DNA from: Octopus sinensis
Taxonomy: Eukaryota
Length of the DNA: 64,000 nt
NCBI RefSeq assembly: GCF_006345805.1
Contig: NC_043015.1
Span: forward strand, 4,588,001 to 4,652,000
Direction of reading: 5' to 3'
A program made the translations under genes and the position numbers. Positions 9,895 through 13,044 of the stretch are shown here, one piece after another. Position 1 is the first letter of the stretch. Each line of letters starts with the position of its first letter. Under the pieces are notes generated by a model. The model had not been told where the DNA came from and ran no database searches. It was given only the letters and a program-made list of their open reading frames with translations.

Positions 9895-10128
9895 ATATAT
9901 ATATATTATATATATATATATATATATATATATATATATATATATATATAAACAAAGATAATGCGATACAATAAAATTAATTATAATCGCCGGTGTACCA
10001 GTACACGCCATATATATACATATATATATATATATATACATATATCATTACATTCAAGGCGAAGAGTGTACTAGATACACAATAGCTGGATAAATTTAGT
10101 GAGATGAGAATTAAAAACTTTTACAAAC

Positions 10129-10219
10129 TTAACTTTTCTTATACTGCAGTTTCGCCAAATTCAGTAATAAAAATAGTATTTATTTACTCAGGCTGGCTCT
10201 TCAGTAAGATTCCTGTTAA
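10129..10219 (-). ncRNA. Type I hammerhead ribozyme, array copy 1
   Basis: Minus strand: UUAAC-aggaa-UCUUA-CUGAAGA-GCCA...UGGC-GAAA-CUGCAG-UA-UAAGA-aaa-GUUAA. Predicted cleavage between plus 10142 and 10141. Confidence 0.9.
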
Positions 10220-10532
10220 CGATGGAAAGACCATACCAATAGATCCATGTGCGTCTATCGAAATGCTCTTTCTAAACTATTCAAAACACTGCGCAGACTC
10301 CGAACAAACCCGACAAAATAGGGGATTGTGGTATATCGTCTAACGGTCAGAAATTTATCGAGAGAATATGTAAACAAAGATAAATGCGATACAATAAAAT
10401 TAATTATAATCGCCGGTGTACCAGTACACGCCATATATTATACATATATCATTACATTCAAGGCGAAGAGTGTACTAGATACACAATAGCTGGATAAATT
10501 TAGTGAGATGAGAATTAAAAACTTTTACAAAC

Positions 10533-10623
10533 TTAACTTTTCTTATACTGCAGTTTCGCCAAATTCAGTAATAAAAATAGTATTTATTTACTCAGGCTGG
10601 CTCTTCAGTAAGATTCCTGTTAA
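10533..10623 (-). ncRNA. Type I hammerhead ribozyme, array copy 2
   Basis: Identical to copy 1. Confidence 0.9.
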
Positions 10624-10935
10624 CGATGGAAAGACCATACCAATAGATCCATGTGCGTCTATCGAAATGCTCTTTCTAACTATTCAAAACACTGCGCAGA
10701 CTCCGAACAAACCCGACAAAATAGGGGATTGTGGTATATCGTCTAACGGTCAGAAATTTATCGAGAGAATATGTAAACAAAGATAAATGCGATACAATAA
10801 AATTAATTATAATCGCCGGTGTACCAGTACACGCCATATATTATACATATATCATTACATTCAAGGCGAAGAGTGTACTAGATACACAATAGCTGGATAA
10901 ATTTAGTGAGATGAGAATTAAAAACTTTTACAAAC

Positions 10936-11026
10936 TTAACTTTTCTTATACTGCAGTTTCGCCAAATTCAGTAATAAAAATAGTATTTATTTACTCAGGC
11001 TGGCTCTTCAGTAAGATTCCTGTTAA
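10936..11026 (-). ncRNA. Type I hammerhead ribozyme, array copy 3
   Basis: Identical to copy 1. Confidence 0.9.
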
Positions 11027-11339
11027 CGATGGAAAGACCATACCAATAGATCCATGTGCGTCTATCGAAATGCTCTTTCTAAACTATTCAAAACACTGCG
11101 CAGACTCCGAACAAACCCGACAAAATAGGGGATTGTGGTATATCGTCTAACGGTCAGAAATTTATCGAGAGAATATGTAAACAAAGATAAATGCGATACA
11201 ATAAAATTAATTATAATCGCCGGTGTACCAGTACACGCCATATATTATACATATATCATTACATTCAAGGCGAAGAGTGTACTAGATACACAATAGCTGG
11301 ATAAATTTAGTGAGATGAGAATTAAAAACTTTTACAAAC

Positions 11340-11430
11340 TTAACTTTTCTTATACTGCAGTTTCGCCAAATTCAGTAATAAAAATAGTATTTATTTACTC
11401 AGGCTGGCTCTTCAGTAAGATTCCTGTTAA
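11340..11430 (-). ncRNA. Type I hammerhead ribozyme, array copy 4
   Basis: Identical to copy 1. Confidence 0.9.
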
Positions 11431-11742
11431 CGATGGAAAGACCATACCAATAGATCCATGTGCGTCTATCGAAATGCTCTTTCTAAACTATTCAAAACAC
11501 TGCGCAGACTCCGAACAAACCCGACAAAATAGGGGATTGTGGTATATCGTCTAACGGTCAGAAATTTATCGAGAGAATATGTAAACAAAGATAAATGCGA
11601 TACAATAAAATTAATTATAATCGCCGGTGTACCAGTACACGCCATATATATACATATATCATTACATTCAAGGCGAAGAGTGTACTAGATACACAATAGC
11701 TGGATAAATTTAGTGAGATGAGAATTAAAAACTTTTACAAAC

Positions 11743-11833
11743 TTAACTTTTCTTATACTGCAGTTTCGCCAAATTCAGTAATAAAAATAGTATTTATTTA
11801 CCCAGGCTGGCTCTTCAGTAAGATTCCTGTTAA
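11743..11833 (-). ncRNA. Type I hammerhead ribozyme, array copy 5
   Basis: As copy 1 except A>G (minus strand) at 11802 in the stem II extension. Confidence 0.9.
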
Positions 11834-13044
11834 CGATGGAAAGACCATACCAATAGATCCATGTGCGTCTATCGAAATGCTCTTTCTAAACTATTCAAAA
11901 CACTGCGCAGACTCCGAACAAACCCGACAAAATAGGGGATTGTGGTATATATATATATATATATATATATATGTATATATATATATAATATATATATATA
12001 CATATATATATATATATATATATATATATATATATATATATATATATATTATATATATATATATATATATGGGAACGTGTCTCTGTGGCTATAAAGCATA
12101 TATTTAAGTCAATTCTGTGATTATATTTCGTTGTTTATTATTTCTTCATCGCCTTTACATAGGGCTCATCGTAATTTTGGACAGGCGTATCAAGTAGTCA
12201 TTCATTTATGTACAAATTGTAGCCTGTGCTGTGTCAGGAACTAGTACTATTTGAAGAAGTAATATCTCACATATTTCAAATTCAGTGAAAAGTTATATTT
12301 AGTGTAACTATTTAAAATATGAAACTGTGCAAAAAATATACATTGAAAAGTTGCTATCATGAGTTTTGAATAATGCAAGAGCAAGATAGGTCTGCTCATG
12401 ACAGTTATGGATTGATCATACGTGTTTTAGTTCAAGTTAATCGTTGGCAAAAACGAAAGGTGGTTATTTTTAATATTTTAATAATTTCTTGATTGATAAC
12501 GCCAGGTACATATACAGAGGCATGTGTTCCTTTAGCCATACATATACAGTGATACACCCAGGTATATTCACCCACAATTACGCACATATCAAAATGTGCG
12601 AGTTTATTAAATATGTATTTATATAAACGTGCGCATAAATACATATACATATGCATATGTATGTATGTATGTATATATATATATATATATATAGAGAGAG
12701 AGAGAGAGAGGGAGAGAGGCAGACAGTCAGACACACAGACAGAGACAGAGAATGAGAGAGAAAGTATGTGGGAGAGATACTATGAGAGGATAAGTCCACT
12801 GATGATCTAAATTAAAAACACTGCTTAAGTGCTATAATTGGTCATCTATCAGGTTCCAAGCTCACAGGTAGACGTCCGCAGTAGGCTTCCAAATCAGCAG
12901 GTGTATATCAAAGGAGAAGGAAAACAAAGCCAAGACAGTTCATTCACACTAAGTAATTATAGTAAGGAGAATAATAGAAAAAATGAGAATTCACTTTCGT
13001 ATGATTGTAAGCTGGCGCGCTCACAATATATATTCTTTTATTCT

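Follow-up and report, generated by a model that had tools for sequence, protein, structure and literature searches.

Metazoan retrozymes of the non-LTR type are non-autonomous, non-coding retroelements composed of hammerhead tandem repeats, a class already described from cnidarians to amphibians, one mollusc (a mussel) included. The locus analysed here, in a 64-kb stretch of Octopus sinensis DNA (the window), is probably an insertion of such an element. Related motifs are known from other invertebrates: the Schistosoma Sm-alpha and cave-cricket pDo500 repeats, like those studied here, carry type I hammerheads and belong to repetitive, non-coding DNA of SINE-like or satellite character. Their helix I, too, is interrupted by an internal loop, and this loop contacts helix II. 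The helix II of Sm-alpha is closed by a short loop whose contacts are non-Watson-Crick; in the octopus motif that position is taken by the internal loop of a long helix II.

The non-LTR retrozymes of Mytilus galloprovincialis (350-390 bp; Cervera & de la Pena 2020, PMC7229834), compared by description, also feature a type I hammerhead in every short, non-coding, AT-rich unit; they are alike in size (403/404 bp here) and in lacking LTRs and any evident PBS or PPT motif. Neither the Mytilus nor the octopus motif has the classical loop 1-loop 2 nucleotides, and in both a minimal hammerhead of the type found in Penelope-like elements (PLEs) occurs nearby. The invertebrate motifs described in the same study share a helix III of 2 bp closed by a tetraloop, a type able to cleave as a monomer (PMC7229834, PMC7761336). 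The octopus element nevertheless belongs to a different sequence family, such families being species-specific, and it differs in a far longer helix II that is interrupted by an internal loop, in a predicted monomer that is not notably self-paired, and in that its circular RNA is a prediction.

Two other groups bear on the comparison. Newt satellite 2 and axolotl HHR_Amex (330-350 bp) likewise consist of tandem type I hammerheads, and their helix III is again palindromic, so that multimeric transcripts can be cut as double hammerheads. However, their helix III has 1 bp rather than 2, they need a dimer for cleavage, they keep the classical loop-loop contacts, and their copy numbers reach tens of thousands, whereas one cluster was seen here within the 64-kb window. 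The minimal hammerheads of PLE pseudo-LTRs (Cervera & de la Pena 2014; Craig et al. 2021, PMC8557442) share the type I topology and palindromic helix III, and PLEs also insert next to (TA)n and have inverted, 5'-truncated partners (PMC8557442). Unlike the non-coding octopus repeats with their extended hammerhead, these motifs have short helices and no tertiary-contact loops, and lie in elements encoding a reverse transcriptase (RT) and a GIY-YIG endonuclease between the pseudo-LTRs.

The more recent of two insertions at this locus, which we call the young array, consists of 4.8 near-identical 403/404-bp units on the minus strand at window positions 9951-11950. Tandem Repeats Finder (TRF) reported a period of 404 bp, 4.8 copies and 99% matches at 10028-11950, and BLAST of the unit against the window, together with unit-by-unit comparison, showed that the final partial unit extends to about 9951 via an internal TA expansion. 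Read in the sense of the minus strand, a 5' partial unit of 195 nt is followed by full units of 403, 404, 403 and 404 nt and then by the 3' partial unit, in which the TA expansion measures 19 nt. The full units show three differences in all (99-100% identity). Their alternation in length arises from two independent, unrelated 1-nt indels, which rules out a dimeric higher-order repeat as its source.

The unit has a G+C content of 34%, no LTRs and no open reading frame (ORF) above 92 aa, and is in this sense non-coding. A protein search with its longest translated frame (98 aa) found no homologue, and neither of two unit ORF translations was on record in an exact look-up. The locus combines several of the features by which retrozymes are recognised: a type I hammerhead, head-to-tail repeats of about 150-450 bp, absence of coding capacity and of LTRs, and a G+C content below 50%. 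The flanks are (TA)n rather than LTRs, and a Helitron origin was ruled out, as the array ends are not Helitron-like and directly abut (TA)n. A candidate Pol III box A/B promoter was unconvincing by eye and is not kept in the older copy described below. A PIF1-like pseudogene lies 3.5 kb from the array.

A hammerhead in each unit of a 403/404-bp array had been proposed from a sequence-only reading, with five copies in total, and both TRF and an exact motif search (CTGANGA-GCCA-N-TGGC-GAAA-CTGCAG-TA; five copies on the minus strand, none in 100 shuffles) confirm this. Every copy reads, on the minus strand, GUUAAC-AGGAA-UCUUA / CUGAAGA / GCCA...UGGC / GAA / ACUGCAGU / A, followed after the predicted cleavage site by UAAGA-AAA-GUUAA, and reading the copies one at a time recovered all of the structural elements originally listed, namely the core, the G10.1-C11.1 pair, the GUA triplet, the bipartite stem I and the self-complementary stem III. 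The catalytic core comprises C3-A9 (CUGAAGA), G12-A14 (GAA), the A15.1-U16.1 pair and a GUA site cleaved before U. Helix I is in two parts of 5 bp each, separated by an internal loop, and helix III comprises 2 bp and a palindromic UGCA tetraloop; two such elements could also pair with each other, giving a double hammerhead with an intermolecular helix of 8 bp. Helix II is unusually long, with 4 bp, a 5x5 internal loop and a 9-bp bulged hairpin, so that 44 nt separate G10.1 from C11.1; the suggestion that the stem II extension sets this motif apart from minimal PLE hammerheads is thus borne out. All pairs in the drawn hammerhead are canonical, in the young copies and in the older one.

The five domains, all on the minus strand and located by motif search and descriptor, occupy 11742-11834 (domain 1, 93 nt), 11339-11431 (domain 2), 10935-11027 (domain 3), 10532-10624 (domain 4) and 10128-10220 (domain 5). 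In plus-strand coordinates, cleavage is predicted at 11756/11755, 11353/11352, 10949/10948, 10546/10545 and 10142/10141, respectively. In domain 1, an A-to-G variant replaces A-U by G.U at one pair in the extension of helix II. The predicted sites would release monomers of 404, 403, 404 and 403 nt, a spacing that had been put forward before and that BLAST of the unit against the window reproduced. A stricter descriptor, which required the exact core, A15.1-U16.1, H17 and all three helices, gave eight matches in the window and one in 30 shuffled windows, or about 0.03 by chance per window.

Comparison with Rfam, which had been suggested as a check, gave a divided answer. At gathering thresholds the whole window has no match, and at E<=10 a 2.5-kb region searched on both strands returned AT-rich, miRNA-like noise only, with no second ribozyme. 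When about 110 nt were searched, Hammerhead_1 (RF00163) was the top family for both subfamilies, with model positions 1-45 of 45 aligned, but the scores (21.2 bits for the young copy, domain 5, and 24.3 bits for the old) fall below the gathering score of 34. An insertion of 30-38 nt in helix II accounts for this shortfall. Nearest-neighbour energies, which leave out core tertiary contacts, favour an alternative UACUG/CAGUA fold over the hammerhead (-16.9 versus -9.1 kcal/mol in the young copy and -21.2 versus -11.3 in the old).

Scores under threshold and AT-rich, low-complexity sequence would fit a hammerhead-like motif that arose by chance in an ordinary satellite, and the copy number might in principle be an assembly artefact. 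We consider either extremely improbable. The exact motif is absent from 100 shuffles and the descriptor matched once per 30 shuffled windows, and an independent, diverged copy keeps the core and has compensatory changes. Furthermore, because the units bear unit-specific variants, the assembler must have resolved distinct copies, which counts against an artefact.

That diverged copy adjoins the array at 9135-9894 and consists of a direct and an inverted, 5'-truncated part. The older direct copy (9135-9643, minus strand) spans about 1.2 units with a period of 429 nt and shares 71-77% identity with the young unit, the value varying with the alignment. The inverted copy (9645-9894, plus strand) starts inside helix II and retains the GAAA, helix III and the cleavage site. 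The two meet head-to-head and are 93-96% identical to each other. The direct copy contains a complete hammerhead at 9229-9312 (minus strand; predicted cleavage 9240/9239), found by the descriptor and by RF00163, so that the locus holds five young copies and one older copy of a complete type I hammerhead, each with an open helix I, the core and helices I-III.

The older hammerhead is identical to the young one in the core, in helix III and in the four helix I pairs nearest the core (1.1-1.4 with 2.1-2.4); the fifth helix I pair is lost. CUUACUGAAGAG and CGAAACUGCAGUAUAAGA are preserved unaltered, and no other conserved stretch in the unit is as long as the latter. Helix II and its extension show four two-sided compensatory changes (C-G to U-A, A-U to U-A, U-A to C-G and A-U to G-C); one more helix II pair becomes G.U in the older copy and none is broken. 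A perfect core and a compensated helix II at an overall identity of only 71-77% argue for long-term selection on the ribozyme. Assignment to the class of non-LTR retrozymes or hammerhead satellites, already advanced in the sequence-only reading, is supported both by the defining features of the unit and by this diverged copy with its compensated helix II.

Metazoan non-LTR retrozymes occur as copies dispersed through the genome and, once self-cleaved, are present as monomeric RNA in linear and circular form. Whether the element is mobile as RNA is a separate matter, as the array could be a silent or fossil hammerhead satellite that expanded as DNA, through unequal crossing-over or replication slippage, yields no circular RNA, is no longer mobilised and has intact motifs only because its copies are young. 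Some observations would fit such an origin. The circular monomer is no more stable than shuffled sequences (minimum free energy -79.5 versus a mean of -77.3 kcal/mol, z = -0.43, 61% paired), whereas described retrozyme circles are 'highly self-paired', a property that the monomer predicted here lacks. The family forms a single cluster in 64 kb, as BLAST of the unit found no further copy in the rest of the window, and 20 kb of O. vulgaris sequence contain none. In addition, unit identities of 99-100% are also produced by local homogenisation. Pattern scans of viral, metagenome and prokaryote-genome collections gave no match, which says little because no cephalopod genomes are among them. Nonetheless, a silent satellite is unlikely: the core is perfect and helix II compensated between subfamilies that are 71-77% identical, and the locus holds two insertions with different architectures and microhomology junctions. 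Slippage explains neither this nor the conservation.

The junctions themselves are informative. At the 5' end of the young array, in the minus-strand sense, a (TA)n microsatellite occupies 11946-12070 and the junction falls between ...GAUAU and ACCACAAUCC. A second (TA)n microsatellite (9891-9950) separates the young array from the older inverted copy, whose 3' ends face each other across it, and both elements stop at a common position in the unit, between ...GUUUA(C) and AUAU. A third tract (9110-9134) borders the older direct copy at its 3' end, with the junction directly after GUACUUAUA. All four outer junctions thus lie on a UAUA or AUAU of the unit beside (TA)n, although (TA)n makes up only 3.5% of the window. 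On sequence grounds, junctions at UAUA/AUAU that abut (TA)n point to RNA-mediated, target-primed insertion rather than to a chance motif, and the cluster comprises two independent insertions that represent two subfamilies. Other repeats of the same genome also adjoin (TA)n, so this adjacency is not specific to PLE-type integration. Target-site duplications of metazoan non-LTR retrozymes, where they occur, exceed 4 bp; any at this locus would be hidden because both insertions sit in (TA)n. A head-to-head arrangement with an inverted, 5'-truncated partner has been described for PLE insertions (PMC8557442), and the direct and inverted 5'-truncated copies seen here are arranged as expected from twin priming.

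The type I hammerhead, the (TA)n targets and the inverted, 5'-truncated partner are all hallmarks of PLEs (PMC8557442), and a 2026 preprint reports a relationship between vertebrate retrozymes and PLE pseudo-LTRs (doi 10.64898/2026.07.22.740005). The repeats might accordingly be pseudo-LTRs or other terminal pieces of a degraded autonomous PLE rather than a separate non-autonomous family. This is very unlikely, since no ORF encoding RT or GIY-YIG is found in or beside the array, the longest ORF of the window does not exceed 182 aa, and Pfam detected no RT or endonuclease domain in the 10 examined of the window's 24 ORFs of >=120 aa. The units are also arranged head-to-tail with no internal region, and their 2-bp helix III and long helices are unlike the minimal PLE type. 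Such a minimal PLE-type hammerhead does exist separately, at 20078-20122, inside another TA-flanked element 8 kb away, which might point to a helper element. Metazoan non-LTR retrozymes share their genomes with autonomous PLEs. In O. vulgaris, 31 Penelope-like families with recent insertions have been reported (PMC13282606), and repeats in common with that species make an octopod origin of the present sequence plausible.

The reading we prefer, a non-autonomous retrozyme, suggests the following life cycle. Its steps are taken from PMC7229834 and PMC7761336, whose model and experiments deal with co-transcriptional cleavage, circularisation by RtcB and cDNAs longer than one unit. A read-through transcript of the minus strand would cut itself at every GUA site, before the U. 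A host RtcB-type ligase would then circularise the monomers, with weak self-ligation as a lesser route. An RT supplied in trans, most likely by a Penelope-like element, would copy the circle or a multimer for more than one round, and the multimeric cDNA could enter a nicked (TA)n microsatellite by target-primed reverse transcription aided by AU/TA microhomology. The outcome of such an insertion would be a short tandem array. Cleavage as a dimer through the palindromic stem III, as originally envisaged, is possible by folding prediction, given that two domains, when cofolded, pair through ACUGCAGU in an intermolecular helix of 8 bp. It would not be obligatory, because a helix III of 2 bp plus UGCA is of the type able to cleave as a monomer (PMC7229834, PMC7761336).

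The internal loops of helix I and helix II, which lie 5 and 4 bp from the core, respectively, may pair with each other by Watson-Crick pairing (CAGG/CCUG in the young copies and AAGGCU/AGCCUU in the old), and this pairing would stand in for the classical loop-loop tertiary contact. Hammerheads with a stem I-stem II pseudoknot (Perreault et al. 2011, PMC3088659) are alike in their potential for Watson-Crick loop pairing of 4-6 bp. In comparison with those, the pairing proposed here is predicted from only two sequences, between which a single pair covaries, and in the older copy it competes with distal helix I.

Finally, it is possible, although we hold the idea only tentatively, that no retrozyme family has been described from a cephalopod before this one, at a locus that keeps both an integration signature and a new Watson-Crick contact between helices I and II. 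If so, the signature would be entry into (TA)n primed by microhomology, a common 3' end position and an inverted partner resembling the product of twin priming, and together these would link the mobilisation of retrozymes directly with target-primed reverse transcription of the PLE type. The new tertiary contact would join the helix I bulge to an internal loop in helix II, itself long and conserved, in a compact ribozyme variant whose long helix II is interrupted. The paired insertions provide a small but concrete clue to integration in their (TA)n targets, in the microhomology at their junctions and in the truncated partner lying in inverted orientation. Retrozymes are an abundant source of small circular RNAs in animals, with very high levels in mussel gonads, and a cephalopod family would bring into the class a lineage whose RNA biology is unusual and whose genome is rich in repeats.

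The young array occupies the minus strand from 11950 down to ~9951, where four full units follow a 195-nt partial unit at the 5' end and precede another partial unit at the 3' end. Tandem Repeats Finder detected a 404-bp period over 10028-11950 (4.8 copies, 99% matches), and an exact search of the window for CTGANGA-GCCA...TGGC-GAAA-CTGCAG-TA returned five minus-strand matches, compared with none in 100 shuffles, bearing out the sequence-only reading of an array of 403/404-bp units with five hammerheads. Cleavage is predicted after the GUA triplet, at plus-strand 10142/10141, 10546/10545, 10949/10948, 11353/11352 and 11756/11755, and would release monomers of 404, 403, 404 and 403 nt, exactly the spacing proposed earlier. 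The full units differ at three places only. Two are independent 1-nt indels, which account for the 404/403 alternation and led us to reject a higher-order repeat. The third, an A-to-G substitution, leaves G.U in place of an A-U pair in the extension of helix II. In the 3'-most partial unit, TA is expanded by 19 nt at an internal TATAATATAT site (10010-10045), one nucleotide is deleted and the junction has a C-to-T substitution; these changes suggest microsatellite slippage within the already inserted element.

Each young unit can be drawn as a hammerhead in which every pair is canonical. Read on the minus strand, the 5' strand of helix I (5'-GUUAAC AGGAA UCUUA, in which the internal loop separates the distal from the proximal part) is followed by CUGAAGA (C3-A9); helix II with its G10.1-C11.1 pair, GCCA (GCCUG AGUAA-A-UAAA UACUAUU UUUA-UUACU GAAUU) UGGC; GAA (G12-A14); helix III with A15.1-U16.1, ACUGCAGU; A17, with the cleavage site directly after it; and the 3' strand of helix I, UAAGA AAA GUUAA-3'. 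A descriptor specifying an exact core, A15.1-U16.1, a non-G at position 17 and a minimum length for each of the three helices matched eight times in the window versus once in 30 shuffled windows. One weak match, at 62407-62488 on the minus strand (CUGAAGA ... GAAA; helix I of 4 bp, helix II and III regions of 51 and 20 nt), has no repeat context and is probably due to chance.

A BLAST search of the window with the unit revealed older relatives, overlooked by the sequence-only reading, that directly adjoin the young array. A direct copy on the minus strand, from 9643 down to 9135 (period 429 nt, ~1.2 units), meets head-to-head a plus-strand copy, inverted and 5'-truncated, from 9645 to 9894; the two share 93-96% identity, and the older copy matches the young unit at 71% to 77% identity, according to the alignment used. 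A complete hammerhead is present in the older copy at 9312-9229. Both CUUACUGAAGAG and CGAAACUGCAGUAUAAGA are identical in older and young copies. The latter occurs seven times in the window (0.04 expected), and no other conserved block of the unit is as long. From young to older, helix II shows two-sided changes at its base (C-G to U-A and A-U to U-A) and in its extension (U-A to C-G and A-U to G-C); another pair turns into G.U, the bulged A is retained and no pair is broken. The four core-proximal pairs of helix I are identical, the fifth is gone, and the distal 4-5-bp helix is rebuilt from other sequence (GGCU/AGCC versus UUAAC/GUUAA). As a comparison of two subfamilies rather than a statistical proof, these differences are what selection on a ribozyme would be expected to leave, and they argue for the long helix II as a genuine and conserved feature.

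The internal loops of helices I and II, at 5 and 4 bp from the core respectively, occupy the positions of the classical loop-loop contact and are complementary in both the young copy (5'-CAGG-3' with 5'-CCUG-3') and the old copy (5'-AAGGCU-3' with 5'-AGCCUU-3'), with one flanking pair covarying from C-G to A-U. Watson-Crick pseudoknots between stems I and II occur in all three hammerhead types, where they are needed for fast cleavage (PMC3088659). A similar tertiary contact here is a lead suggested by two sequences; in the old copy, the proposed pairing competes with the distal part of helix I.

The Rfam Hammerhead_1 (RF00163) check proposed earlier fell below threshold. At gathering thresholds the window had no Rfam match, and at E<=10 with 2.5 kb searched no hammerhead appeared. 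With only ~110 nt searched, RF00163 was the best of 4227 families, aligning over its full length (1-45 of 45) to the young copy (21.2 bits, E 0.0032) and the older copy (24.3 bits, E 3.2e-4), with 30-38 nt of extra sequence modelled as an insertion into the loop of helix II. As both fall short of the curated 34 bits, neither copy is formally a member of the Rfam family; as a control for the tightness of this cut-off, a textbook minimal hammerhead at 20078-20122 likewise scored only 32.2 bits (E 2.6e-6). By nearest-neighbour energies, the hammerhead fold is less favourable than an alternative helix (UACUG/CAGUA); because these energies ignore core tertiary contacts, they leave the hammerhead fold viable. 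A two-domain cofold gave an 8-bp intermolecular ACUGCAGU helix, as expected for a double hammerhead. As a hairpin, helix III has 2 bp and a UGCA tetraloop, a form typical of invertebrate retrozymes able to cleave as single motifs (PMC7229834, PMC7761336), so dimer cleavage may be possible and would not be required.

(TA)n tracts at 9110-9134, 9891-9950 and 11946-12070 flank both insertions; such tracts make up only 3.5% of the window. All four outer junctions lie on UAUA/AUAU motifs of the unit, and the young array and old inverted copy share an end position, between ...GUUUA(C) and AUAU. Penelope-like element (PLE) insertions favour (TA)n and combine a direct with an inverted 5'-truncated copy (PMC8557442), the same layout and setting as the older copy; such a pair would be the expected product of twin priming during target-primed reverse transcription. 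Junctions and layout together favour an RNA-mediated insertion. As (TA)n also adjoins other repeats of the same genome, this preference does not single out one enzyme. The near-identical young units could derive from one multimeric cDNA copied from circular or multimeric RNA; recent DNA-level homogenisation may instead lie behind their near-identity.

The window is 32% G+C, gene-poor, without long ORFs and unusually rich in microsatellites, with 56 (TA)n tracts 12 bp or longer and long TAA, ATT, ATAG and TCT arrays. At 15.5-17.6 kb lies a plus-strand PIF1/Helitron-like helicase pseudogene (15503-15871, 16475-16735 and 17349-17648; Pfam PF05970, PF21530), whose sole protein-database relative is an Octopus vulgaris 'ATP-dependent DNA helicase' (59% identity). 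The 20-kb O. vulgaris locus around that helicase gene (L001) has several interspersed repeats in common with the window, at 65-87% identity, which makes an octopod origin plausible. One, of ~400 bp (window 13042-13443 and 40533-40904; L001 6437-6880 and 15058-15407; 65-78% identity), is also next to (TA)n, showing that in this genome such a position is widespread among repeats and not peculiar to hammerhead elements. The hammerhead at 20078-20122 on the plus strand, an unrelated third example of canonical minimal PLE type (CACACG, CUGACGA, GAGGU-CAAU-ACCUC, GAA, ACUCGAGU, C|CGUGUG), lies inside a ~650-bp element (~19638-20287) with (TA)n on both flanks. This repeat family also occurs in O. vulgaris as an inverted pair without the hammerhead part (L001 7954-8957).

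The unit has 34% G+C, no LTRs and ORFs of at most 92 aa, and no protein relative was found for its longest translated frame. Non-coding sequence, low G+C and the lack of LTRs define metazoan non-LTR retrozymes (PMC7229834, PMC7761336) and, with a hammerhead per unit, support the earlier retrozyme assignment at the sequence level. Mussel retrozymes have units of 350-390 bp (PMC7229834), versus 403/404 bp here, and most families form arrays of up to seven units (doi 10.64898/2026.07.22.740005). A highly self-paired circle, a described retrozyme feature, was not found: with an MFE of -79.5 kcal/mol (z = -0.43) and 61% of bases paired, the circular monomer does not exceed shuffled sequences in stability. 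We rejected an autonomous PLE because none of the window's larger ORFs was seen to encode a reverse transcriptase or an endonuclease.

For this family, self-cleavage, circular RNA, copy number and the helper enzyme are inferred. In the literature searched, hammerhead ribozymes and retrozymes were not found linked to cephalopods beyond PLE surveys, and a 2026 O. vulgaris repeat annotation lists PLEs with recent insertions and no ribozyme-bearing repeats (PMC13282606). We consider it likely that the array and the older copy belong to the hammerhead-bearing tandem retroelements, a known class. They are possibly the first such retroelement from a cephalopod, with modest twists on that class: a long, conserved, interrupted helix II and an informative insertion architecture.
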